Sequence record: NC_019406.1
Length of the DNA: 64,000 bases
Strand: one strand, 5' to 3'
This document shows positions 4,801-45,498 of the stretch, piece by piece. The position numbers and the translations under genes are program-made. The notes under the pieces are model-generated. The model was not told the origin of the DNA, ran no database searches, and worked only from the letters and a program-made list of their open reading frames with translations. The stretch's first letter is position 1. Each line of letters starts with the position of its first letter.

Positions 4801-6620
4801 TTTCCGTTGTTCATGGTGAGGATCGCACGCTTCCCGTTCTGATAGGTAATGACATGCGATTGCGACCAGGACGACAGGCCCTTGTTGTAGCCCATGTCCA
4901 GCTTAGACGAGGTGCCCGAGGTATAGATGCCGTCGTGGATTTCGCACGAGTGGGTATGTCCAGTCGTCGCCTTCGGCCCCATCTTGGTGAAGGCTCGCGG
5001 ATTGCCACGGGCGCCGTTAGCGCCCAGGTGTCCGTGCATGCCCTTCTCGATGTCCAGGACCCGGAACGACTGATCTTCGCGAAGGAACTCGACGCCGGCG
5101 CAAGGCGTCTTTTCGAAGAACGTCGTCAGGACGTGGTTGAAGATCGAGAACTTCTTGGCCTTCTCGGCGATCTCGGGATCGCTGCTCTTCTTGTCGCGGA
5201 TCGCCTTGTAGGAGGCCAGTTGGCATTCCAGGAAAAAGATCGCGTTGGGAGGGTCTTGACGGTAGTCGGCTTCCTTGAGCCAGCGCTTCAGCGCCAGATC
5301 GTGGTTCGACTCGACGATCACCGTCTGGCAGAAGTCACGCTTCGTGTTGTCGATGAAGTAGGCGACCTCACGCAGTTCTTCTTCCACCAAGTCCACACCT
5401 TCGATGAACAACTCGAACATGTGGTGGGCGTCGCGGATGTTGTGGTGGTTGCGCGACTGGAAGTCGGCGACGTCGTGGAAGAACTGGTACTTAGGGCGCA
5501 GCACGTCAATCAGAGGCGTCTCCGCCAAACGTGACTCTCGCATGTCGATCCAGACGCGCGAGCCGTTCAGACCGACTTGCTCGGTCGGCGCGATACCGAA
5601 GCAGGTCTCGCTGACAACCGGGTCGATCTGTGCGACGTGCAGGTCGCCCCAATTCACCGCTTCGATGCGGTGACCGTGAGTGACCTCCGCGACGTTCTTG
5701 TACTCCAGGTAGTCGTCCGGGAACGACATACGCTCGTAGCTGCCGTCCGCGAAGGCTTCCCAATACCGGCTAGTCGCTTCGCGCTTCTCGGCGCGGCGCT
5801 CTTCGCGCTCTTCCTCGGTCAGCGGCGCCTTGTGCATCTCAACACGGGTGTCGAGGTCGTAGAAGGAGCCGTCGGCTTCGCCCAGGAGGTGACGACAGAA
5901 GAACGTACCGTCTGCCGCGATCTCGACCAGCACCGCGCCCAGGGCGTGGTGGAACGAAGCTTCGATGCCGGCGCGCATCGGAATGTAGTTAGGCTTGGTG
6001 ACCGCGCCGGTGGTCATGATGATCTTCGCCGGCTCGTGCTTCATGGTCGGCACGGACTTCAACTGCACCTTGGCGTGGGGAATGATGCCCCAGCGGTGGC
6101 GCGTGTAGGTCTCGAAGCCTTGAAGCGGCGACTTCGCGGTCGGACGCGTGTTCATCTCGCCGCAGAAGTCGATGCCGTCGCCCAGGCGGATGCGCTCCTG
6201 GACACGGTACTGGTTGATCCAGGGATGCCAGTACGGCACCTTCTTGGGATCGTTGTTACCGAAGAGGCGCTTGCTGTAGGTGAAGCCGGCGACGATCAGT
6301 TCGCAGGGGCCGAGCGCCTGAAGGCTGTCGCGGTAGGCTTCCAGCGCCGCCAGGAACTCGTAGTGGAGTTCGGTGCTCTCCTGGGCCGACGTCAGGATGA
6401 AGCGCGCCACCGGTTCGCTGATTTGGCGGACCGTGGTCGACGGCGCTGGGCGATGGGTGAAGCCGCCCTCGGCCGCCTTCGCCAGACGCAGTTGAAGGGT
6501 AGAGCGCGGCACGCCATACTTGCGAGAGAAGGCGCGCTGCCCGCCGATCTTGTTGACCAGTTCGGCCAGCTTGTCGGGGGTGACCGAATCAAGGTCGAAG
6601 GTCGGGGACTTAGCCGGCAT
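4788..6620 (-). CDS. N-terminal HTH plus calcineurin-like metallophosphoesterase protein
   Basis: HTH-like FSRKYGVPRSTLQLRL; phosphoesterase motifs WGDLH, ESNHD, HGH, GHTHS. Confidence 0.8.
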   Translation of the reverse strand: MPAKSPTFDLDSVTPDKLAELVNKIGGQRAFSRKYGVPRSTLQLRLAKAAEGGFTHRPAPSTTVRQISEPVARFILTSAQESTELHYEFLAALEAYRDSLQALGPCELIVAGFTYSKRLFGNNDPKKVPYWHPWINQYRVQERIRLGDGIDFCGEMNTRPTAKSPLQGFETYTRHRWGIIPHAKVQLKSVPTMKHEPAKIIMTTGAVTKPNYIPMRAGIEASFHHALGAVLVEIAADGTFFCRHLLGEADGSFYDLDTRVEMHKAPLTEEEREERRAEKREATSRYWEAFADGSYERMSFPDDYLEYKNVAEVTHGHRIEAVNWGDLHVAQIDPVVSETCFGIAPTEQVGLNGSRVWIDMRESRLAETPLIDVLRPKYQFFHDVADFQSRNHHNIRDAHHMFELFIEGVDLVEEELREVAYFIDNTKRDFCQTVIVESNHDLALKRWLKEADYRQDPPNAIFFLECQLASYKAIRDKKSSDPEIAEKAKKFSIFNHVLTTFFEKTPCAGVEFLREDQSFRVLDIEKGMHGHLGANGARGNPRAFTKMGPKATTGHTHSCEIHDGIYTSGTSSKLDMGYNKGLSSWSQSHVITYQNGKRAILTMNNGKWRL

Positions 6621-7365
6621 AGAACATCTCAGCCTTGGCGTGGGGAAGCGTCTGAGCCTTCTGCCAGTCCCACACGTAGAACGCGTAGGAGAAGCGCGGG
6701 CTCGCGGACTTTTCGCCTTCCTTCTTCTCGACCCAGACCGGGCGGAAGCGCAGGGTGATCTTGGCGGCGAAGGCGGGGTGGTCGATCAGGTCGGCGCGCC
6801 CCTTGGCGGCGTCCCATTCGTGGCGCATCAGGAAGGCGACGTAGCCGTGCTGCGCTTCCATCAGTTCGAGGGCCTTGCGGACCGCGCGATCGGTATCCTT
6901 GCCGTAGGGCGGGTTGGAGATGATGCAGTCAGGCGTGAAGCCTAGCATCTCGGTGATCTCCGAGAACGGGCGCGGGCGGACCGGTGCAGGCTCGGCACCC
7001 AGCCAGACGCCGTCGTCGCCAGTGTTCTTGTCGATCAGACGCTCCCACGCAGCCAAGGCGCTGTCGAACGCCTCGCCATCCGGGTAGATGCTGAAAAAGT
7101 CGACCAGCCCATGGAGGTCCAGACCATCGTATTGGACGATGTCCGTGGCGCCGGCGGAACGGCAGTAATTCTTGATGATGTGGTAGATGGCACCGTTACC
7201 TGCGAACGGTTCCCAGAATTGCATCGCCTCCAGATCGTCCTCGACGACCGAGACGTACGCATTCGTCGCTCGGGCCGGGGTGGGATAATGATCAAGGGGA
7301 GCACGCGCGTAGTTCGTGCCGCCCAGCATGGAAGGGTCCTTACGACCCGTGTCGGTGATAGCCAT
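6610..7365 (-). CDS. DNA N6-adenine (or N4-cytosine) methyltransferase
   Basis: WEPFAGNG SAM-binding motif and IISNPPYG catalytic motif; start placed at ATG 7365. Confidence 0.85.
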   Translation of the reverse strand: MAITDTGRKDPSMLGGTNYARAPLDHYPTPARATNAYVSVVEDDLEAMQFWEPFAGNGAIYHIIKNYCRSAGATDIVQYDGLDLHGLVDFFSIYPDGEAFDSALAAWERLIDKNTGDDGVWLGAEPAPVRPRPFSEITEMLGFTPDCIISNPPYGKDTDRAVRKALELMEAQHGYVAFLMRHEWDAAKGRADLIDHPAFAAKITLRFRPVWVEKKEGEKSASPRFSYAFYVWDWQKAQTLPHAKAEMFYAG

Positions 7366-7460
7366 GCCGGGATAACTGGCATGGTTAACCGAAAGCGTCA
7401 AGAATCCTGGCATTTCTCTCCAGGCTTGACCGTTACGGCCCTTACGGATAGGGAATAATC

Positions 7461-7735
7461 AACCGAGGCGGGTCCACCACACCAACCGCGCGCCTCACGC
7501 TCTGCGCGCGAATTTGACCGTAACTCGAAGTGGCCGGACGCCTCAGGTGGAGGAGGCTAAGGCAATGGGCGAAGGACGGGTGCGGCGAGCGTATAATTGA
7601 GGCCGGCTGAAGTTAGCTGGGAATGTAGGTGTCCTGCCACCGTTCCCACGATGCGCGGAATCGACAGGTCCGTGTGACGCGAACGCCGGCCGAGAATAGA
7701 CGACAAGGCGTGACGCCCGGAGAGAGTGCCGGACT
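7461..7735 (+). ncRNA. putative structured ncRNA unit 1, ending in the conserved module at 7675-7732
   Basis: no credible ORF; TTGACC at 7426 with a -10-like TAGGGA 17 nt later; multiple hairpins; 3' module shared with units 2 and 3. Confidence 0.5.
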
Positions 7736-8209
7736 TCTTGACACGAAGAACTAGATCGTAGACACCTTGGGCCGACTAGGGGACCTGGGGTGGTGCGAAT
7801 GGGCTTCCACCTACAGTCATCTGGCAGCCTCTGGGACCCCAGGCTGTCAGGCTCAACGGTGATGAGATGCCAACGGCTGGCTGGAATGCCGATATCACCT
7901 GACGCGAACGCCGGCCGAGACGATACGACCAGGGCGTGACGGGGGCCAGAGGCCTCAATCCATTACTTGACCGGCGCCGGGAGTTCTGGCATCCAGGCTG
8001 TGATGTCTCAGGAGCCTCCGTTCCTGAGGGACCTATTCAGGCGATCGTGACCGTCTCAAGGGTGCTGTCCTGCGAGAAGATCGTGAGCCCGCGTATGAGA
8101 CGTCATTTACGCGCGGGACACCCATGGTGGAAGGGAGCCGCTATGTGGCCCACCTGACGCGAACGCCGGCCGAAAAGTACGATCAGGCGTGACGGGGGCC
8201 AGAGGCCCT
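7675..8209 (+). repeat. three near-identical copies of TGACGCGAACGCCGGCCGA(G/A)A...GGCGTGACG
   Basis: copies start at 7675, 7900 and 8155; the intervening sequences are unrelated and about 170-200 nt long. Confidence 0.95.
7768..7960 (+). ncRNA. putative structured ncRNA unit 2, module at 7900-7956
   Basis: TTGACA at 7738 upstream; hairpins GGCAGCCT/AGGCTGTC and GGTGAT/ATCACC; conserved 3' module. Confidence 0.5.
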
Positions 8210-8210
8210 A
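7997..8210 (+). ncRNA. putative structured ncRNA unit 3, module at 8155-8209
   Basis: TTGACC at 7967 upstream; hairpins CTCAGGAG/TTCCTGAG and GGTGG/CCACC; conserved 3' module immediately before tRNA-Cys. Confidence 0.5.
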
Positions 8211-8215
8211 CACCT

Positions 8216-8302
8216 GCTACGGTGGACTGAGTGGTAAGGCGTGGGACTGCAAATCCCGCTGGCGAAAGCCTATCGTGGGTTCGATTCCCACTCGTAGCTC
8301 CA
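8216..8302 (+). tRNA. tRNA-Cys(GCA) with a long variable arm
   Basis: acceptor GCTACGG/TCGTAGC, anticodon loop CTGCAAA, T-arm GTGGG-TTCGATT-CCCAC, U73, encoded CCA; extra arm GGC-GAAA-GCC; 87 nt. Confidence 0.9.
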
Positions 8303-8320
8303 AAATTCCTGACATTTTTC

Positions 8321-8360
8321 TGCCAGCCTGCTTGACAAGCCGAAAAGCGTCCGGTACACA
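8321..8360 (+). promoter_or_regulatory. sigma70-type promoter for tmRNA
   Basis: TTGACA 8332-8337, 17-nt spacer, TACACA 8355-8360. Confidence 0.65.
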
Positions 8361-8366
8361 CCTCTC

Positions 8367-8712
8367 ATCGTCGTAATACGGCATACACGATTGGCGGCAA
8401 GACAGGGGTGCGATTCCCCTCGCCTCCACCAAGACCCCACCGGCCGGTGCTTCGGCGCCGCGATCTGCCCCAGCGACAGATCGAAATCTGAACGGTGCGG
8501 TGGGGTCCTGATGGGGGCGATCAGTTTCGATTGGCGCTGTGACTGGAAGACGCGACGTAGGGTGACCTCCTGGCTTAGGCTTCGGCCGAGGTAATTGGGT
8601 CAACGCTGACAAATGTCAACGACAACGACGCTCCCGTGATGGAGCAACTGCTGGCGGCCTAACGGCCTAAAGCGGCGCCCGGCGGGGGCGTGTCAACAGA
8701 ACCCCGCCACCC
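8367..8712 (+). ncRNA. ssrA: circularly permuted (two-piece) tmRNA
   Basis: acceptor piece ends GAC-AGGGG-TGCGATT-CCCCT-CGCCTCC-A-CCA (8431); hairpin intervening segment 8432-8512; coding piece starts GGGGGCG at 8513 and gives a G3:U70 Ala acceptor stem; tag ORF 8615-8662 VNDNDAPVMEQLLAA*; CAACAGAA near the 3' end. Confidence 0.92.
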
Positions 8713-8891
8713 TGCTTCCGCAGCCGGAGGCGACGACAACTAACGGCATGATCTGTCGGCAACCGATCAACCAGTTTTCGTCTCCGGCTTCGCAAGTAGG
8801 TTTGGGGAGTAGTCCTCCGAGGGATCGGAGTATAACGCTCTCCGGGGAGGCGCCTGGGACCATCCAGCCCAGACCGTCTCCCGAATTTTAT

Positions 8892-8954
8892 GCCGGGGAT
8901 AGGGTGGTCGCTCGCCCTAAACAGTTCGGGTAAGCTCCGACTGCCCCGGCTCCA
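8892..8954 (+). ncRNA. 63-nt tRNA-like RNA with a CCA end and only two internal arms
   Basis: perfect 7-bp GCCGGGG/CCCCGGC stem, then T and CCA; internal hairpins TAGGG/CCCTA and CAG-T-TCGG/CCGA-CTG. Confidence 0.55.
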
Positions 8955-8961
8955 AGTTTGA

Positions 8962-9038
8962 TGCGGGGTGGAGCAGTCCGGTAGCTCGTTTGGCTCATAA
9001 CCAAAAGGTCGAGGGTTCAAATCCCTCCCCCGCATCCA
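8962..9038 (+). tRNA. tRNA-Met(CAT) with an fMet-like D-arm
   Basis: TGCGGGG/CCCCGCA acceptor, D-arm GAGC/GCTC, anticodon loop CTCATAA, T-arm GAGGG-TTCAAAT-CCCTC, U73, CCA; lacks the three consecutive anticodon-stem G:C pairs and the C1:A72 mismatch of initiators. Confidence 0.9.
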
Positions 9039-9039
9039 C

Positions 9040-9530
9040 AAGCTGAAGCTCCGATGGCGGTCCTAGGCCGCAGCTTTACCCGGTCCCACGTCGGACAAGG
9101 CCGGGGTCTAGGTGGTGAGATATGATCGACGCCGGCGGAGCGCCAAGCCACCTTCCGCCACCAACGCCGTGTGCGTGACAAGCCTGGAGAGAACGGGCAC
9201 TCCAATCCGGGGTATGAGGCCGGATGTAGCGAACGCCAGCGAGATCGGCGTGACTGGTGGGGGAGAGGACCCACGCTGATTTCGATGAACGCATTCGGCG
9301 ATGTCGGCTTTCTCCATGGAGCCGCCGCCTGAGGCAGGAGCTACTGCCTCCGTCATGCGTTCTGCCAAATCAGCTTCGTCGCGGGGGTTCGATTCCCCAA
9401 GTTCGCGCCTCCTAGGGCGTAGGGCTGCATGGGACACCGACGGATAAACGGGAGTTGCCGGTTCGAGTCCGGCCTGGGCGGGGACTAGGAAACCCGGCCG
9501 GTGGAGGTAACTGGAGAACCTCGTCCGACC
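9040..9530 (+). ncRNA. highly structured non-coding region with two further module copies and two orphan T-arms
   Basis: modules at 9164-9198 and 9227-9274; T-arm hairpins at 9384-9398 and 9457-9473; GAACGCAT/ATGCGTTC multi-branch stem. Confidence 0.5.
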
Positions 9531-9536
9531 TATTTT

Positions 9537-9623
9537 GGTGTGGTGGCTCGACAGGTAAGGCGCCGGCCTCATAAGCCGGAGGGCGAAAGTCCTATGTAGG
9601 TTCGAATCCTACTCACACCTCCA
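9537..9623 (+). tRNA. tRNA with CAT anticodon (Met or Ile2) and a long variable arm
   Basis: GGTGTGG/TCACACC acceptor, CCGGC-CTCATAA-GCCGG anticodon arm, AGGGC-GAAA-GTCCT extra arm, GTAGG-TTCGAAT-CCTAC T-arm, U73, CCA; 87 nt. Confidence 0.88.
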
Positions 9624-9629
9624 ACTATG

Positions 9630-9815
9630 CGACGCCCCAGCGTCCGGACGACTCCCTGGCCGGTAACCACTCCGTCACAGGGACTCCCAGCCGGGGATAG
9701 CATGCCGAGGACGGAAGGCGCACGCCGTGACTGCCGGGAGAGTACGGTATCGAGTGAAAGCCGTGAGGCAGACCCTAGTGGCTCGACGGGGGACGTGAGG
9801 TGGAAGCCCTCACAC
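9630..9815 (+). ncRNA. putative structured ncRNA with the sixth module copy
   Basis: ACGG/CCGT-GAC-TGCCG-GGAGAGTA-CGGTA at 9711-9749; terminal GTGAGG-TGGAAGC-CCTCAC hairpin. Confidence 0.45.
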
Positions 9816-9820
9816 CTTCC

Positions 9821-10069
9821 TCAATTGAACAGAAGCTGCTTGCTGTCGGGCCGGAACTGTACGCCGAGTTCGACCAGGATGCGCTTGATCGTGGCGTAGA
9901 AGTTCAACACCGCGCGGTGATCCGAGATGGATGCGCCTGTCACCAATGTGCGGGTCTTCCCCTCGTGCTGAACACGAATCTTGCAGTGCTTGTTGCGCTC
10001 GACCTCGAACGCCACATCGTGGTGCTTGAGGATGCGTTTCGCCATTTCTACGGTGTCTCGGCCAGCCAT
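9821..10069 (-). CDS. small hypothetical protein, possibly HicA-like fold
   Basis: 82 aa from ATG 10069; KHCKIRVQHEGKTRTLV resembles HicA-type alpha-beta-beta-beta-alpha proteins. Confidence 0.6.
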   Translation of the reverse strand: MAGRDTVEMAKRILKHHDVAFEVERNKHCKIRVQHEGKTRTLVTGASISDHRAVLNFYATIKRILVELGVQFRPDSKQLLFN

Positions 10070-12392: not shown

Positions 12393-13601
12393 CTACTGGA
12401 ACTCGGTGCCGCCCTTGCGGGTCAGGTACGCTTCCGAGACGTGCTTGAGGATCGGGCGCAGGCGCTTGCCCGAGTCGAGCGTACGCTTGCGCTGATCGCC
12501 GGCGGCCGTGACCACCACACCTTCGCGGATGTTGGGGCCTTCCTGCTGATCCATCTTGCGGCCGAGCGTAGTCGTGCCCGACGCCAGCTTGTCGATCACC
12601 GCGCGATCGAACGGCCCCTTGTAGAGGACGGGGACGCGGTCGACGCCCATGGCGGCAAAGAAGGCCATCTTGTCGGCGTCATCCAGGTAGGACGTGCCGT
12701 GATTGTCGGAGACCCCAACGTCGAACGCCGCGAACGCCTTGGTCGTGAGGCCGTAATGCAGGTCTTGCACGCCGGCGCCGTAGACTTCGCCCAGCAGGTG
12801 AACACGGCAGCCGGGGAAGCGGGTCTGAGCCACTTCCTGAAGCTTGTCCGCCAGAGGCGCCAGCACCTTGACGTACAGCGTCTTGTCCAGGTTCTTCTGG
12901 ACGTTGATGAAGGTCAGGCCATCGGCGCCCATGCCCTTCGTCGAGATCGCGACGCGGCCGTCGCCGAACAGTTCGGGATCGGGCGCGGCGTCATCGACGT
13001 GGCTGATACGGGCCAGAGTACCGTGCAGCTTTTCGGTTACCACGACTTCTTCGCCGTCCTCAAACAAGTCCGGGAACGCCTTGATGTTCTCGATGTCGTA
13101 GTCCAGGCGCGACTCAAAGACGCCCTTCATCAAGCCGTCCATGCTGGTCGGCACTTCGGGAACGTACTTGGTGATGCCGAAGAACGGGGCGACATCTTCG
13201 TACAGGCTGACCTTCTTTCGACTCGCAGGGAAGATGCCCGCGCCAGCGTCGCCGAAGCCGACGATGATGCGGCCATTGACGTCACTGGTCTTCCAGACAA
13301 GGCCCTGGCTCAGCACGCCACGCAGCGTGATCGCCTTGACGCGGTTTCCGCGCGCGCCGGCCAGGATACCGACGCCCTTATCGGCGTTCCAGTATCCGCG
13401 CTCTTTAAGGTGCTGATCTGGTACGACCGCGCCCTCAGGCACGTAGATGACGTACTCGCCCTTGACGTAGCGGTGAGAGCCGTCCGGGTTCTTATTGGCG
13501 ATCGCCTCGTAACCGCGAATGCGCAGGATCGAAAGGCGGTCGGCATTGGGGTGGTCGTAAACGTCGTCGACCAGCAGGATCGGGACTTCGAAAGTGCTCA
13601 T
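12393..13601 (-). CDS. RNA ligase (Rnl2/DRB0094-type) with N-terminal OB-like domain
   Basis: HPNADRL N-terminus, motif I TEKLHGT, GEVYG, FAAFDV, REGVVV, C-terminal LKHVSEAYL. Confidence 0.92.
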   Translation of the reverse strand: MSTFEVPILLVDDVYDHPNADRLSILRIRGYEAIANKNPDGSHRYVKGEYVIYVPEGAVVPDQHLKERGYWNADKGVGILAGARGNRVKAITLRGVLSQGLVWKTSDVNGRIIVGFGDAGAGIFPASRKKVSLYEDVAPFFGITKYVPEVPTSMDGLMKGVFESRLDYDIENIKAFPDLFEDGEEVVVTEKLHGTLARISHVDDAAPDPELFGDGRVAISTKGMGADGLTFINVQKNLDKTLYVKVLAPLADKLQEVAQTRFPGCRVHLLGEVYGAGVQDLHYGLTTKAFAAFDVGVSDNHGTSYLDDADKMAFFAAMGVDRVPVLYKGPFDRAVIDKLASGTTTLGRKMDQQEGPNIREGVVVTAAGDQRKRTLDSGKRLRPILKHVSEAYLTRKGGTEFQ

Positions 13602-14617: not shown

Positions 14618-14958
14618 CAGAAGTCGAGTCCCAGGTCTTTACGCTGCTCAGGCGTCAGCGCCGCCATAGCCGCGCTCTTGGCTTCAGCCTTTTGCCGACC
14701 ACGCTGCGCGATGAGGTCGATATTGAGGTCCGAAGCGGGGAACCCATCCTGGGCGCCCTCGGCAAGCAGATAGTATCGGTCACCGACCTTGATTGCGTAG
14801 CGTTCGCGGACTGTGCCCATACCGCCGAAGTAGCCTTTTCCGGTCGCGGCATAGTCGGCTTCGCCTGACGAAGCGAAGTAGCCGACAATGCCGCCGACAA
14901 CGCCACGATCATCGGTGGTCGTATAGGTGACGTACAGGCGGACGATCTTCGCTTCCAT
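14617..14958 (-). CDS. hypothetical protein
   Basis: 113-aa ORF in the operon. Confidence 0.65.
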   Translation of the reverse strand: MEAKIVRLYVTYTTTDDRGVVGGIVGYFASSGEADYAATGKGYFGGMGTVRERYAIKVGDRYYLLAEGAQDGFPASDLNIDLIAQRGRQKAEAKSAAMAALTPEQRKDLGLDF

Positions 14959-15815
14959 TAGCCGACTCCTAGGGCATCGAGCAGAAGCTGATTAGCCTCG
15001 CGCTCGAAGGCGGCATTCGGCGGCAGCCTGTCGAAGCCCTTCTCCTTCACCCAGCCGATCGACGACTCCACGAAGCTGTCGAGCGCCGGGATACGCGTGC
15101 CGTGACCGACTTCGCCCATGGTCGCCTTGCGGCCCAGGAGCTTCGCCACTTCGTCGCGAGCGGCATCGGGAATGATGTCATGCGACATAAGCTGCGGCAG
15201 CGTCATCGGCGGGACTTCGCCGTAGCGCTGAATCCAAGCGATCGCGCAGGCGCCCCGGATGGCGTAGAGGTACTTCTTGAGGTTGACCGTGGTGATGCCT
15301 TTGATCATCACGCCGTCGCGCTCATGCTGGGCGAGCACCTCAGCCGTCGGACGGTTGTTGATCTCGCCCTCGTAGCACTGCCGAGTCAGCCCGAAGTAGT
15401 GGCGGGCGCTGGCTTCCGGGCTGGAGTTACGCTTGATCAGGTCGCGAAGCTTGTAGGGCAGCGGACCATGCTCGCGATAGATCAGCGGACTGGACAGCCA
15501 TTCGGCGACCGTGGCGTTGCCCTTGACGAGCAGCCCCAGGGCCTTACGCAGGTCCCAGCCATTCAGGTCCCAGACACCTTCAATCGGACGCTCGATCACG
15601 TCGCGCGGCGTCGTCAGCCCCAGATATTGCGAGAGCGGGCGAACGTAGAAGAACCGGACGTCGTTGTCGCTATCCGGCGACGGGAAGCCCCAGGCGCGCG
15701 AGCCGCTCTCCACCGCGAACACGATGGTGACGTTGTCCTCGGCTTCGACCCGCCCGAGACGGTTGTTGGCCTCGCCATAGACATCCAGCGGCAGGGTAGG
15801 GGCAGTGAACGACAT
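14958..15815 (-). CDS. Pol-beta superfamily nucleotidyltransferase (RlaP/YcgL-like)
   Basis: ESGSRAWGFPSPDSDNDVRF, GWDLRKAL, EWLSSPLIY, KKYLY; SD GAGGAG before ATG 15815. Confidence 0.88.
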   Translation of the reverse strand: MSFTAPTLPLDVYGEANNRLGRVEAEDNVTIVFAVESGSRAWGFPSPDSDNDVRFFYVRPLSQYLGLTTPRDVIERPIEGVWDLNGWDLRKALGLLVKGNATVAEWLSSPLIYREHGPLPYKLRDLIKRNSSPEASARHYFGLTRQCYEGEINNRPTAEVLAQHERDGVMIKGITTVNLKKYLYAIRGACAIAWIQRYGEVPPMTLPQLMSHDIIPDAARDEVAKLLGRKATMGEVGHGTRIPALDSFVESSIGWVKEKGFDRLPPNAAFEREANQLLLDALGVG

Positions 15816-42102: not shown

Positions 42103-43026
42103 TTAGGTAGCCAGAAGCGAAGGCGACTGGATCGTCTGGGCATAGCGTTCGATCGCGCCGGAGATGCGGTCACGAAGCTCCTGCGGTTCGAAACGCCGGG
42201 AGGGTCCGTGCATCTCCAGCAGGCGCATGGCGCCAGTGAGGAGACGCACCCGCATCGCCGCCGAGACGTAGATACCGACGTTGTCGTCGAAGTCGATGAT
42301 CTCGTCGAGGTACATCGGTCCCTGCGGCGAGTTGAATTCGATGCAAGCCTCGATGTTGGCGATGCGATCGGCGACCTTGACCGGCGCCGCCTTGGGCAGG
42401 TCTGCGATTTTCGCGTACTGCTGCTTATTGCGGGCCTTGCGGTTCTGCTTGACGCCGTCGATGTACATCTCGCCAGTGACGGCCCAGACCAAGTCTTCGA
42501 TCTCGTCACCATAGCGGGCGCGAACACGGACGCGGCGCGATACCATCGCTTCGTCTTCCCAGCAGTCCTCTTCCACGTCATGGAGCCAGCCCACGACGAG
42601 GTAGCGCCAGCCGGCATCGAAGTCGCGCAGCACTTGGACGACCTTGCCCAGGTGATAGCCGTGCCGCAACTTACGCGCCTCGTCGTACCATTGCTCACCG
42701 TGGTGCATGACGGCGAAACGGCGCGCGTCTTCGATGATGTGCGTACCGTCGGTGTGATACGTCTCCTGTTCGCCCGTATCCGGATCGATGAAGTACATCA
42801 TCGGCAGGCCGCTGAGACGAATCGGGTGATGCGTCTTGCCCGAGGCGATCGAGAACCAAACCTCGCCGGTACGTGCGACTTCAGCCGCCTCCTCGGGGGT
42901 CAGCTTCCAGCACGAGATGTTCTCGATACCGTTGCCGTGGACGTAGAGAGGCCGCACATGGTCCTCGGTGCCCGGCGCCGGATTGAGCACCTTGTTCCAG
43001 CCGCAGAAGTCGATGGGGTCCGCCAT
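42103..43026 (-). CDS. HD-domain (SpoT/Mesh1-like) hydrolase with an extra N-terminal domain
   Basis: FAVMHHGEQ, YHLGKV, WLHDVEED, VKVADRIAN. Confidence 0.85.
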   Translation of the reverse strand: MADPIDFCGWNKVLNPAPGTEDHVRPLYVHGNGIENISCWKLTPEEAAEVARTGEVWFSIASGKTHHPIRLSGLPMMYFIDPDTGEQETYHTDGTHIIEDARRFAVMHHGEQWYDEARKLRHGYHLGKVVQVLRDFDAGWRYLVVGWLHDVEEDCWEDEAMVSRRVRVRARYGDEIEDLVWAVTGEMYIDGVKQNRKARNKQQYAKIADLPKAAPVKVADRIANIEACIEFNSPQGPMYLDEIIDFDDNVGIYVSAAMRVRLLTGAMRLLEMHGPSRRFEPQELRDRISGAIERYAQTIQSPSLLAT

Positions 43027-43577
43027 CAGAGCGCCTTTCGCATCGCCAGCACCTCGTCCAGGTGCAAAGGCGTGAAGTTAGTCTGCTCGACACAGACGTT
43101 GATGTAGCGTGGGTCCGTCTTGTTCATCAGACGGGGCCAGCGCGGGTGGGGCACCTTCTTGGCGTGGAGATGCCCGTGAACATTCCACCCGAAGCGGTCG
43201 ACTTCCGACGTGTGGATCGGCACGTGCGTCAGAGCCAGTCGGTGTTCTGGCATCACTCGGATGCCGTAGACCTCCTTAAAATACTCCAGGTATTCCGTGG
43301 TCTTGAAGACGTCGTGGTTGCCCCGGATCAGGCGCTTACTGCCGTTGAGGCGGCCGACCAGATGCAGGTTGCGTTTCGTGATGACGATGTCGCCCAGCAG
43401 GTACGCCTTGTCCTGTGGCTTCACCAGGGCGTTCCAGCGGGAGATGATCGCTTCGTTCATCTCATCGGCGTTCGCAAACGGCCGCAGCGGCGTAACGCCG
43501 TCGGGCATCTTGAACTCGGTACAGGTCTTCTCGTGACCCAGATGCAGGTCGGACAGGAACCAGATGTCAGCCGGCAT
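43026..43577 (-). CDS. calcineurin-like phosphoesterase
   Basis: SDLHLGH, LGD, GNHD, THVP, HGHLH. Confidence 0.9.
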   Translation of the reverse strand: MPADIWFLSDLHLGHEKTCTEFKMPDGVTPLRPFANADEMNEAIISRWNALVKPQDKAYLLGDIVITKRNLHLVGRLNGSKRLIRGNHDVFKTTEYLEYFKEVYGIRVMPEHRLALTHVPIHTSEVDRFGWNVHGHLHAKKVPHPRWPRLMNKTDPRYINVCVEQTNFTPLHLDEVLAMRKAL

Positions 43578-44268: not shown

Positions 44269-45498
44269 CTAACCCTTGACGCACAACACCTGCTTGAGGG
44301 TGGCGACGATCTCCACCATTTCTTCCTGGGCCGCCATGACGAGTTCGATCGGCTTGTAAGCCTTCGGCGTCTCGTCGATCACGCCTTCGTCCTTGCGGCA
44401 CTCGACGCCCTTCGTGGCTTCGACGTGCTCGTCCAGGGAGACGAGCTTCTTCGCCGCCGAACGCGACATGACGCGGCCGGCGCCGTGGCTGCACGAGCAG
44501 AAGGCGTCAGCGTGGCCCTTGCCGCGCACGATGAACGACTTGGCGCCCATCGAACCCGGAATGATGCCGAGTTCGTCCTTCTGCGCCGACACCGCGCCCT
44601 TGCGGGTCACGAAGATGTCCTCGCCGAAGTGGCGTTCCTTGTTGACGTAGTTGTGGTGACAGTTCACCGCTTCCTTGTCGGTCTTGAACGCCGGCACGAA
44701 CTCCCGGATCGCCTTGAGCACGCGGACCATCATCATGTCGCGGTTCAGGCGCGCGAAGTCTTGCGCCCAGCCCACGGCTTCGATGTAGTCGTCGAAATCC
44801 TGCTCGCCCACTTCGAGCCACGCGAGGTTCTCGTCCTGCGGGCGCACATGGCGCTTTGCCAGGGCGTTCTTCGCCTTCTCGATGAAGTAGTTGCCGATCA
44901 CGTTGCCGACGCCGCGCGATCCCGAGTGCAGCATCACCCACACGTTCGGGTCCGTCGTCCCCTGATCGGTCTGGATGCAGATTTCGATGAAGTGGTTGCC
45001 GCCACCCAGCGACCCGAGTTGGGTCACGTTGTTCGACGTCTCCAAGATCGGATGCTTTTCGCACAGCTTCTTGAACCGCGCCTCCAGCCCAGAATCGATC
45101 CAGGCACGCATGATAGAGTTCGGGATGCCATGACGACCCGGTTCCTGCCACGAACCCTTCGCGCCCGGCCCGCCGTGCGGAACCGCACGTTCGATCGCCG
45201 AACGCATCGCCGCCAAGTTGTCCGGCAGTTGCGAAGCAGTCAGCGTGGTGCGCACAGCCATCATGCCGCAGCCGATGTCGACGCCGACCGCGTACGGGAT
45301 CACCGCATCCTTGGTCGGGATCACCGAACCAACGGCTGCGCCGTACCCGGCGTGGACGTCGGGCATCACCGCGACGTGCTTGAACACGAACGGCAGCCCG
45401 GCGACGTTGTGGGCCTGATCTTCGGCGCCGCGCTCGAAAGGCACACCGTCGACCCAAGCCTTGATTTGCCCGCCGTAGCGGCCGTCGATTTCGAGCAC
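44269..45498 (-). CDS. rtcB: RtcB RNA ligase
   Basis: MPDVHAG, GVDIGCGM, GGGNHFIE, HSGSRG, HHNY, RKGA, SHGAGR, YKPI. Confidence 0.97.
   Translation of the reverse strand: MLEIDGRYGGQIKAWVDGVPFERGAEDQAHNVAGLPFVFKHVAVMPDVHAGYGAAVGSVIPTKDAVIPYAVGVDIGCGMMAVRTTLTASQLPDNLAAMRSAIERAVPHGGPGAKGSWQEPGRHGIPNSIMRAWIDSGLEARFKKLCEKHPILETSNNVTQLGSLGGGNHFIEICIQTDQGTTDPNVWVMLHSGSRGVGNVIGNYFIEKAKNALAKRHVRPQDENLAWLEVGEQDFDDYIEAVGWAQDFARLNRDMMMVRVLKAIREFVPAFKTDKEAVNCHHNYVNKERHFGEDIFVTRKGAVSAQKDELGIIPGSMGAKSFIVRGKGHADAFCSCSHGAGRVMSRSAAKKLVSLDEHVEATKGVECRKDEGVIDETPKAYKPIELVMAAQEEMVEIVATLKQVLCVKG

Follow-up and report, generated by a model that had tools for sequence, protein, structure and literature searches.

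The 64,000-nucleotide (nt) stretch analyzed here, referred to as the window, covers positions 124001–188000 of the Caulobacter phage CcrColossus genome (NC_019406); window position 7400 is genome position 131400. Within it, a 2.4-kb section lacking a credible open reading frame (ORF), 7414–9820, carries six copies of a small structured RNA; we call this section the RNA island and the repeated element the module. By sequence comparison, the six belong to a widespread RNA motif that recurs in hundreds of unrelated phage sequences and in which an H-type pseudoknot abuts a hairpin. The module is a strongly constrained, autonomously folding RNA located at the junctions of RNA units and conserved across host phyla. 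As far as could be checked, this phage RNA family has not been described, which is a narrower statement than that it has never been seen: literature searches with sequence strings and phage tRNA-array motifs did not retrieve the module, and a catalog of 10,006 candidate viral RNAs may list it unnamed.

Structure and covariation of the module

The anatomy of the module was defined from 174 distinct instances. In this collection, the dinucleotide 5′ of GA-ACGCC covaries with nucleotides +2 and +3 after ACGCC, the pairs observed being GC/GC, GG/CC, UC/GA, CG/CG, UG/CA, CC/GG, AU/AU, and more. The three successive pairs of this helix (S1) form in 87%, 81%, and 60% of instances versus 45%, 49%, and 38% in shuffles (0 of 2,000), and neighboring registers obtained by sliding pair in 34–58%. 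Pair counting with a pseudoknot bracket and a mutual-information scan both reproduce S1. Owing to this covariation, the helix that a first-pass annotation of the sequence had taken as the first stem is now recognized as S2, one half of an H-type pseudoknot with the strand order S1–S2–S1′–S2′ and covariation in both helices. The pairing of the dinucleotide with nucleotides inside the first loop had been overlooked, and the "GCGA linker" proposed as a D-loop analog is the 5′ strand of the pseudoknot stem plus a 2-nt loop.

The full module proceeds from S1 (2–3 bp) through a GA loop (L1), S2 (5 bp, AC...GU), a single nucleotide, S1′, and a variable loop ending in A to S2′. An invariant GAC and one purine (A in 58%) follow, leading into the terminal hairpin P3, which has a freely covarying stem of 4–6 bp, a G-C closing pair, and a loop that reads GAGAGA in 98 of 140 instances and AGA in 12 of 140. 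Past P3 lie an A-C tail and ~8 G-poor nucleotides. Pairs of P3 and S1 rank highest in mutual information, by which the linker and the first tail nucleotide also covary as A·A; the junction nucleotide (loop 2) covaries with the final nucleotide of loop 3 as a non-Watson–Crick G·A pair (84 of 140). Many compensatory pairs support P3, both in 35 and in 122 distinct sequences, and 0 of 500 shuffles reach its score, while RNAalifold on its own recovers S2 and P3. S2 initially seemed invariant as ACGCC/GGCGU because our first search patterns fixed this helix; unanchored samples contain ACGUC/GACGU (>20 cases), ACACC/GGUGU, ACCGC/GCGGU, AAGCC/GGCUU, ACGAC/GUCGU, and others. All three helices covary in instances from other phages, bearing out the earlier proposal that the RNA is selected for pairing.

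The most conserved part of the module is the hairpin unit UGAC-A-stem-GAGAGA-stem-AC, which stands alone in some phages, and a 5-bp helix next to GAC is missing from about one-third of the metagenome instances found with the hairpin as anchor. Because enterobacterial phages carry the hairpin unit without the pseudoknot, this unit is the conserved core, and the abutting pseudoknot is an add-on. The CbK-like long forms, which include modules 1–3, have a CC-AGA-GG hairpin tip and an extra internal loop (GAC/CGAGA) beyond S1. We do not claim a long extension of S1 ("P1") for these forms: Karma has a convincing version of 7 bp, and those of Rogue, Domovoi, and locus L030 are plausible; the module 2 version is broken in CcrPW, and the minimum free energy (MFE) fold of module 2 pairs the P1 strand elsewhere.

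Between them, sequence inspection, pattern matching, and a covariance model place all six copies in CcrColossus where the first-pass annotation had located them, the last one marginally. The pattern GCGTGAC-N4-9-AGAG has six matches in the window against 0.40 expected, and 0 of 100 shuffles reach six. Five are claimed copies, while the other (10502) is no module but a match within a helicase gene; copy 6 was missed because it reads CCGTGAC. The covariance model derives from 35 compact instances, all in unrelated IMG/VR contigs and none from a CbK-like phage, and was run over all 64 kb with filters off. Its top five matches are copies 1, 5, 3, 2, and 4 (E 6e-5 to 0.015), at 7678–7737, 9228–9278, 8158–8213, 7903–7960, and 9159–9202, respectively, with copy 6 (9706–9752) only seventh. 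No other significant match was found in the window, and none in the adjacent 50 kb of the genome.

All six modules are on the + strand. Module 1 (7679..7734; 26.6 bits, E 6e-5), a long form, comprises S1 at 7679–7680/7689–7690 (GC/GC), L1 GA at 7681–7682, S2 as ACGCC 7683–7687/GGCGU 7707–7711, GAC at 7712–7714, and P3 as CCGG 7717–7720/CCGG 7729–7732 with the loop AGAGAGUG. Its MFE fold recovers S2 and P3, and it is conserved in CcrPW, where a U-to-C change turns a G·U into a G-C pair in the putative S1 extension. Module 2 (7904..7956; 21.6 bits, E 9.6e-4), a long form of repeat family D1/D9, has S1 at 7904–7905/7914–7915, S2 at 7908–7912/7933–7937, GAC at 7938–7940, and P3 as GGGGCC 7942–7947/GGCCUC 7951–7956 around an AGA loop. 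The third long form, module 3 (8159..8209; 22.3 bits, E 6.3e-4), has S1 at 8159–8160/8169–8170, S2 at 8163–8167/8186–8190, GAC at 8191–8193, and P3 at 8195–8200/8204–8209, ending 6 nt ahead of tRNA-Cys (8216). Module 4 (9160..9200; 16.6 bits, E 0.015) is a reduced form with a 4-bp S2 (ACGC 9164–9167/GCGU 9173–9176) closing a 5-nt loop, GAC at 9177–9179, and P3 as GCCUG 9182–9186/CGGGC 9194–9198 with the loop GAGAGAA; its orthologs in Karma, Rogue, and BL10 are full modules starting 2–4 nt past tRNA-fMet. Module 5 (9229..9276; 23.3 bits, E 3.7e-4), a compact form kept in CcrPW, Karma, and Rogue, has S1 as GC 9229–9230/GC 9239–9240, L1 GA, S2 at 9233–9237/9247–9251, GAC at 9252–9254, and P3 as GUGGG 9257–9261/CCCAC 9270–9274 with the loop GGAGAGGA. 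Module 6 (9706..9749; 10.5 bits, E 0.45) is degenerate and kept in CcrPW; it has a possible S2 (ACGG 9711–9714/CCGU 9725–9728), GAC at 9729–9731, P3 as GCCG 9733–9736/CGGU 9745–9748 with the loop GGAGAGUA, and no evident S1, and its MFE fold misses the module.

Copies 1, 2, 3, and 5 are thus full and copy 4 is reduced, while copy 6 is decayed and owes its recognition to context and conservation in CcrPW. The compensatory change that had been noted in copy 6 is weak there, although true compensatory changes of the same stem occur in other phages. Folding energies of these short GC-rich RNAs are not distinctive relative to shuffles (z −0.15 to −0.63; copy 6, +0.71), and the case for the modules is therefore a comparative one.

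Distribution and genomic context

Six related phages, which fall into four groups, have retained the module: CcrPW, Karma, phiCbK, Rogue, BL10, and Brevundimonas phage Domovoi. A comparison with such relatives had been proposed in the first-pass annotation, which did not anticipate that the element reaches far beyond Caulobacter phages. Copy number differs between genomes, with seven in CcrPW, six in CcrColossus, and three in Karma. In CcrPW (locus L002, 2763–3685), a 594-nt ORF, HOU00_gp415, is inserted past module 3, whose hairpin reads GAUGGG-GAGAGAA-CCCAUU, and an extra long-form module ahead of tRNA-Cys brings the total to seven. The insertion and the extra module are evidence of recent module gain or loss.

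Two different pattern scans of IMG/VR each returned at least 120 matches, and the exact 23-mer GTGACAGCCGGGAGAGACCGGCA has at least 120 matches in metagenomes from soil, groundwater, lakes, and sludge; these contigs show no preference for ending at the motif. A strict pattern retrieved ten metagenome-assembled genome contigs, labeled Gammaproteobacteria, Myxococcales, Planctomycetota, Chloroflexota, Spirochaetaceae, and Clostridia. Among the loci whose flanking ORFs were scanned, two have recognizable phage genes, for an Erf-like protein in one of these contigs and for a DNA polymerase in an IMG/VR contig. With the consensus as a blastn query (E ≤ 1), 33 of 50,697 cultured phage records matched. 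Carriers include Stenotrophomonas phages Bhz63, BUCT708/709, phiSHP3, and Pokken (N4-like); Pseudomonas phages Medea1, Cruim01, and Itty13; Acinetobacter phage Alexa; Cronobacter phages CS01 (a T1-like member of Drexlerviridae), SG01, and ESP2949-1; the lambdoid Escherichia coli phage mEp390; Klebsiella phage P7641; and Phaeobacter phages, Rhodobacter phages, and cyanophages. The enterobacterial phages have only the hairpin unit, (U)GAC-A-GCCGG-GARAGA-CCGGC-AC, without a pseudoknot, and CS01 contains a 23-nt exact match. The strict pattern found no copy in a Caulobacter or other cultured-host chromosome except for two false positives, and the hairpin is rare among 5,426 E. coli genomes, which rules out a host element.

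Tandem pairs and triplets are common, and a canonical module is often followed by a GCGACACCUGC...GGUGUGAC variant. In IMG/VR loci with an SU10-type capsid gene (L092, L113, L122, L143, L149, L158, and others), this variant class, S1-G-ACACC-U-S1′-...-GGUGU-GAC-hairpin, lies a few nucleotides after the canonical module. Loci L113 and L077 hold three modules each within 190–290 nt.

The module typically sits between the stop codon of one phage gene and the start codon of the next, and every gene family common to several loci is on the module's strand. It lies directly 3′ of the major capsid gene in 14 SU10-type loci and in Bhz63, and past a tail-tube gene elsewhere; in two further locus groups, the upstream gene is taken to be a capsid gene. 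In mEp390, P7641, Medea1, and Pag-Yong1, the module occupies a long untranslated region ahead of a gene block, beside a divergent or repressor-like gene, and we read these regions as early-operon leaders. A tRNA on the same strand lies within 300 nt of 26 of 153 modules (17%): in 13 cases a tRNA begins no more than 11 nt past the module, in 8 the module begins no more than 19 nt past a tRNA, and 4 modules exactly fill a tRNA–tRNA spacer. No tRNA at all is present in 106 of 135 loci. All-against-all clustering of ORFs within 4 kb revealed no protein family in more than 14 of 131 loci as a candidate partner. Terminator-like sites are not enriched downstream of modules (14 of 253, versus 17 of 242 upstream and 37 of 783 at random).

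Known RNAs and candidate functions

We compared the module with Rfam 15, whose 4,227 models include tRNA, transfer-messenger RNA (tmRNA), hammerhead, twister, pistol, hatchet, hepatitis delta virus (HDV), riboswitch, RAGATH, and GOLLD/ROOL families, a check that the first-pass annotation had advised. No model overlapped a module at the gathering threshold in the window or at E ≤ 10 in 7300–9900, and none matched on 17 module-bearing loci at E ≤ 1; on three loci searched at E ≤ 10, the only neighbor was a chance-level ctRNA_p42d match (E 1.3). Terminator-like sites number 0 in 7300–9950, and the module tail is A-C followed by G-poor sequence, with TTTT within 16 nt in 23 of 140 instances. In agreement with the first-pass annotation, the element is not a tRNA, a clustered regularly interspaced short palindromic repeat (CRISPR), or a canonical terminator. 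The mutual-information scan contained no flank/tail covariation indicative of an acceptor stem, and the tail reads A-C-N, with ACC in 16 of 140. A tRNA microhelix or RNase P substrate (hairpin plus ACCA) was rejected, given that ACC follows the hairpin in only 11%.

Several other systems share individual features with the module. The guanidine-III (ykkC-III) riboswitch has the same H-type topology, a similar size, and a third loop ending in GGAC-N-A-like purines before the second stem; in contrast, the module has a first loop of 2 nt, not 7, and matches neither RF01763 nor any other Rfam riboswitch. A gene-specific ligand switch is unlikely because the downstream genes are mutually unrelated and the module occurs in tRNA arrays. 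The antitoxin RNAs of type III toxin–antitoxin systems (ToxI-like), which are tandem, near-identical repeats of ~36–45 nt associated with an endoribonuclease toxin locus, do not fit either, nor does a phage mimic of them: tandem modules differ in sequence and spacing and share no neighboring protein family. Arrays of noncoding RNA associated with UG27 reverse transcriptases consist of ~135–167-nt units together with the UG27 enzyme and two accessory genes (bioRxiv 10.64898/2026.09.22.753630). The module units are ~50 nt with strong primary-sequence conservation and no shared gene family within 4 kb, and no reverse transcriptase is annotated in 99 kb of the CcrColossus genome. A Shine–Dalgarno or standby site formed by GGAG in the loop was rejected, as GAGG is base-paired in the CbK-like forms, the next AUG is at least 17 nt away, and the tRNA contexts have no ORF. 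Also rejected was a recoding stimulator past capsid genes, the distance from stop codon to module varying from ~13 to 65 nt.

We tentatively favor, with rather less than even confidence, the reading of the module as an autonomous cis element that marks boundaries on phage transcripts and is recognized by a conserved host factor. The module would fold by itself within phage transcripts as a punctuation element, and a factor shared among bacterial phyla, be it an RNase or the transcription or translation machinery, would recognize the invariant loop and its flanks. Such recognition would set where adjoining RNA units end and begin and would leave structured, protected ends. In the CcrColossus island, the units so delimited would be the leader RNA by module 1, RNA A by module 2, and RNA B by module 3 ahead of tRNA-Cys, then the section from tRNA-fMet by modules 4 and 5 ahead of tRNA-like RNAs, and the section from tRNA-Met by module 6. 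The options offered in the first-pass annotation, a protein-binding handle, a 3′ stabilizing element, or a processing signal, are close to this reading. The T7 RNase III sites and the Mu-gpT-DE motif provide a partial parallel, as they too lie between cistrons and directly past major capsid genes and have a presumed role in transcript ends or differential stability; however, the module helices are far too short for RNase III, and the module sequence is conserved across phyla, unlike these lineage-specific elements. Mu-gpT-DE is presumably an Rfam family, and no Rfam family matched the modules.

Several points weigh against a boundary element. We know of no RNase that reads such a loop across phyla, and a structure 2–7 nt from a tRNA 5′ end is expected to hinder, not help, RNase P. 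A general expression signal would have many sites per genome, whereas the module is rare in cultured phages (the 33 of 50,697 records at E ≤ 1). ORF-based classification, which is crude and noisy in GC-rich DNA, puts a divergent gene ahead of the module in 30% of classified cases and a convergent gene past it in 14%. The sporadic spread and the change in copy number among CcrPW, CcrColossus, and Karma suit an accessory trans-acting RNA equally well. It is also possible, though we would lean against it, that the module represents a new self-sufficient RNA class exchanged by phages of many phyla, serving as a ribozyme insulator, a polymerase-reprogramming element, or a decoy, with UGAC-A-hairpin(GAGAGA)-AC as the active or recognition core.

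Among more specific accounts, a new class of small self-cleaving ribozyme is unlikely. The active site would combine the GAGAGA loop with the pseudoknot and the invariant GA and GAC; scission at or close to the GAC-A linker, a similarly doubtful proposition, would part transcript units from one another, with the pseudoknot at the upstream 3′ end and the hairpin at the downstream 5′ end. The module is of suitable size (~48–55 nt), is pseudoknotted, and has ~20 near-invariant unpaired or junction nucleotides. Its cross-phylum, tandem, and intergenic or tRNA-adjacent occurrence without a partner protein recalls twister, pistol, hatchet, and theta ribozymes (PMC10879173). The last are minimal HDV-like ribozymes of gut phages that start within ±1–5 nt of a tRNA 3′ end, adopt a nested P1/P1.1/P2/P3/P4 fold, and have a catalytic C in J4/2 (PMC10879173). 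Like the module, they are small pseudoknotted RNAs scattered in Caudoviricetes, in noncoding spacers and gene-sense, often beside tRNAs, and their carrier phages encode RNA ligase and nucleotidyltransferase genes, with an RNA ligase annotated as the DRB0094 family enriched (PMC10879173). Yet the S1–S2–S1′–S2′ order with a separate hairpin cannot be threaded onto the theta fold: only 1 nt separates S2 and S1′, leaving no room for P3 of an HDV-like nested double pseudoknot of the order P1–P2–P3–P1′–P1.1–P4–P2′, and the hairpin lies outside the pseudoknot strands. Modules near tRNAs make up only 17%, and positions upstream of the tRNA outnumber those downstream. Hammerhead ribozymes are defined by CUGANGA and GAAA blocks, a cleavage-site block, and three stems (PMC10085705); compact modules have neither block, in classic or permuted order, and carry GAC in place of GAA, while CUGA appears in the CbK-like long forms only. 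With no known catalytic core and no Rfam ribozyme match, and with hairpin-only units conserved in mEp390, P7641, and CS01, catalysis becomes harder to sustain. CcrColossus encodes RtcB, a presumed DraRnl-type ligase, RlaP, and a phosphoesterase, which handle 2′,3′-cyclic-phosphate and 5′-OH ends, but these RNA-repair genes are equally explained by defense against anticodon nucleases or by a phage Ro/Y-RNA module. We give a comparably low rating to a nascent-RNA signal acting on RNA polymerase, in which the hairpin would function like boxB, assisted by the pseudoknot, in a nut- or put-like element for processive antitermination or pausing, and would permit read-through of long untranslated or highly structured stretches. 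mEp390 and P7641 have two tandem hairpin units in an ~700-nt untranslated stretch just downstream of a CI-like repressor gene, where lambdoid phages carry nutL or putL and where NCBI annotation calls no gene in E. coli prophage homologs; in mEp390, a promoter-like TTGACA-N17-TACATT precedes the units. The hairpin, with five GC-rich pairs and the purine loop GARAGA, is comparable to lambda boxB, its leader position in these two lambdoid-type phages is shared if our reading of the leaders holds, and, as for HK022 put, no nearby phage protein gene is needed. Conservation of RNA polymerase across phyla would explain that of the sequence, and modules lie ahead of tRNA arrays and in a noncoding island, where Rho and terminators are a problem. 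Unlike lambda nut, however, the module has no boxA (CGCUCUUUA-like), occurs in multiple and tandem copies per genome, and has an upstream pseudoknot; boxB loops vary from phage to phage, unlike the 6-nt loop of the module, which is conserved across phyla. In mEp390 and P7641, the boxB-like hairpin occupies the leftward leader; mEp390 has no rightward counterpart, and the first downstream protein lacks the arginine-rich N terminus of an N-type protein. The put elements (putL/putR) are two adjacent stem-loops of ~70 nt that act on RNA polymerase, with no pseudoknot mentioned in the paper that aligns ten put sequences, and the module bears no sequence or architectural likeness to them. Further difficulties are the lack of terminator enrichment downstream, the four modules that exactly fill tRNA–tRNA spacers, and the TTGAC boxes, which follow rather than precede long-form modules in CcrColossus, CcrPW, and Domovoi.

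We have little confidence in a trans-acting decoy or sponge, a small RNA freed from tRNA arrays and mRNAs by the processing of its neighbors that would build up during infection and titrate a widely shared host factor, a defense nuclease, or a signal molecule. Slots in tRNA arrays with tRNA-like spacers of 2–7 nt would let RNase P and 3′ processing free the module, and the sites past capsid genes and in presumed early leaders are expected to be highly transcribed. Multiple and tandem copies that vary in number between close relatives, sporadic occurrence among unrelated phage types as seen with accessory anti-defense genes, and exact conservation of even the stem sequence (the 23-mer above) are in keeping with such a role. 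Nevertheless, the loop mimics no anticodon loop, T-loop, or CRISPR repeat, most copies lie between ORFs where release is not assured, and no toxin or defense gene is linked among ORFs within 4 kb. The parallel drawn in the first-pass annotation, a mimic of the SmpB-binding tRNA-like domain of tmRNA that SmpB, RNase P, or anticodon nucleases would bind as a handle or decoy, we consider highly improbable. The resemblance lies in local order, a purine-rich junction, a helix, GAC, and a 5-bp hairpin closed by G-C, and the permuted tmRNA nearby (8369–8662) does repeat the linear series "CGA | stem | GAC | hairpin" (...UUCGAUUGG... and ...GGCAAGACAGGGGUGCGAUUCCCC...). In the module, though, GCGA is pseudoknot strand S1 plus the GA loop, the junction is a pseudoknot, and the hairpin loop is GAGAGA or AGA rather than the GUUCRANYC of a T-loop. 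There is no acceptor stem, CCA, or aminoacylatable end, ARAGORN and the Rfam tRNA and tmRNA models are silent on modules, and the motif is common in phages without a nearby tmRNA. Very little also speaks for an element acting as DNA, whether a mobile intergenic repeat, a single-stranded DNA hairpin serving as a replication signal or promoter, or an operator beside promoters. Very different contexts share the 23-mer without a mismatch, TTGAC boxes adjoin the long-form modules, and GTGACA-N5-GAGAGA is loosely like the layout of SP6-type promoters. Against this, pairing is kept, including G·U pairs, in three helices, one of them a pseudoknot, and all shared neighboring gene families are on the module's strand; the distance from module to TTGAC varies from 17 to 26 nt, and a single-subunit polymerase is not known from most of the phage types that carry the module.

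The RNA island of CcrColossus and implications

The island is bounded by the start of the DNA methyltransferase gene gp162 (6610–7413, − strand) and the end of gp164 (9821–10045, −). From its leader, it runs through module 1, TTGACA, RNA A, module 2, TTGACC, RNA B, module 3, tRNA-Cys, TTGACA, and the tmRNA, then through tRNA-fMet, module 4, a small hairpin, module 5, tRNA-like RNAs, tRNA-Met, and module 6 to the island end. ARAGORN and Rfam identify tRNA-Cys(GCA) (8216–8302, +), tRNA-Met (8962–9038, +; the tRNA-fMet of this order), and a second tRNA-Met(CAU) (9537–9623, +), which might be an elongator Met or Ile2-type tRNA. The Cys and second Met tRNAs are 87 nt each, with a long extra arm that is unusual for such identities. 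Rfam also detects a circularly permuted, two-piece tmRNA of the alphaproteobacterial type (8328–8711, +; 83.8 bits), which is absent from the GenBank annotation, where only three tRNAs are listed; ARAGORN misses it in this window and detects its orthologs in CcrPW, Karma, RB23, and L030. RNA A (7765–7903, ~140 nt, +), between modules 1 and 2, and RNA B (7998–8158, ~160 nt, +), between modules 2 and 3, are ~90% conserved in CcrPW, with folding z-scores of only −0.66 and −1.20 and no Rfam match.

Three −35-like hexamers were read from the + strand: TTGACA at 7738–7743, 4 nt past module 1; TTGACC at 7967–7972, past module 2; and TTGACA at 8332–8337, ahead of the tmRNA. GTAnACA-like or GCATCCA sequences lie 13–14 nt past these boxes, and TTGAC follows long-form modules in CcrPW and Domovoi too. 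These boxes may be phage or host sigma-73-type promoters, in which case the island would possibly consist of several transcription units; we infer this role, since a scan of the island for E. coli-type promoters found no match.

Two tRNA-like elements follow module 5 within 9275–9536 (+). A 20-bp stem joins 9275–9294 with 9355–9374, a T-arm-like GGGGGUUCGAUUCCCC lies downstream of it at 9382–9397, and the second T-arm-like sequence is GCCGGUUCGAGUCCGGC. Rfam returns a weak match to YrlA, a Y-RNA-like family, at 9433–9545 (23.1 bits, E 0.076), and CcrColossus encodes a Ro60 ortholog, gp139, with TROVE and vWA domains (genome 107047–108456; locus L291, 33047–34456, −). Taken together, these features suggest that the island may hold phage Y RNAs. 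Weak sub-threshold Rfam matches also occur near modules in phage tRNA arrays at other loci, to skipping-rope RNA (L075, 511–601; 26.2 bits, E 0.065) and to YrlA (L065, 1430–1547; 31.1 bits, E 0.007). The window further encodes RtcB (gp216, 44269–45498, −; E 3e-124), an RNA ligase with matches to RNA_ligase and PHA02142 OB-fold domains (gp167, 12393–13601, −) that is taken to be of the DraRnl type (Rnl5), the nucleotidyltransferase RlaP (gp172, 14958–15815, −), and a metallophosphoesterase (gp213, 43026–43577, −). By analogy, these RNA-repair genes near the island, together with Ro, resemble the bacterial rsr–yrlA–rtcB module.

The annotated gp163 (a hypothetical protein of 69 amino acids, 9108–9317, −) runs antisense to modules 4 and 5 and is probably a spurious ORF overlying RNA genes. 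In mEp390, gp36 likewise overlies the hairpin unit, and the E. coli prophage homologs have no gene annotated there by NCBI. A perfect 15-nt identity (CAAGCCUGGAGAGAA) links the module 4 hairpin (9179–9193, +) with the ribosome-binding site of gp162 (7414–7428, −), for which ~0.003 chance matches are estimated. The gp162 site forms a P3-like hairpin, CCUGG-AGAGAAAUG-CCAGG, with the Shine–Dalgarno sequence in the loop and the AUG at the 3′ edge, and is kept in CcrPW.

If its structure and distribution hold, the module constitutes an abundant, strongly conserved phage RNA family that lacks an Rfam entry. Relative to the first-pass annotation, it emerges as a cross-phylum family with a pseudoknot, and the analogy to tmRNA as superficial. 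Time and again, small RNAs that combine ~20 invariant nucleotides with a pseudoknot and lack a partner gene have proved to be ribozymes, riboswitch-like sensors, or direct effectors of the polymerase or ribosome. For CcrColossus, the modules supply a grammar for an otherwise unannotated RNA island of 2.4 kb, in which unknown RNAs accompany tRNAs, Y-RNA-like elements, and a two-piece tmRNA. Synthetic biology would also gain a useful insulator or handle from an element of 50 nt that functions in groups as distant as Caulobacter, enterobacteria, and cyanobacteria.

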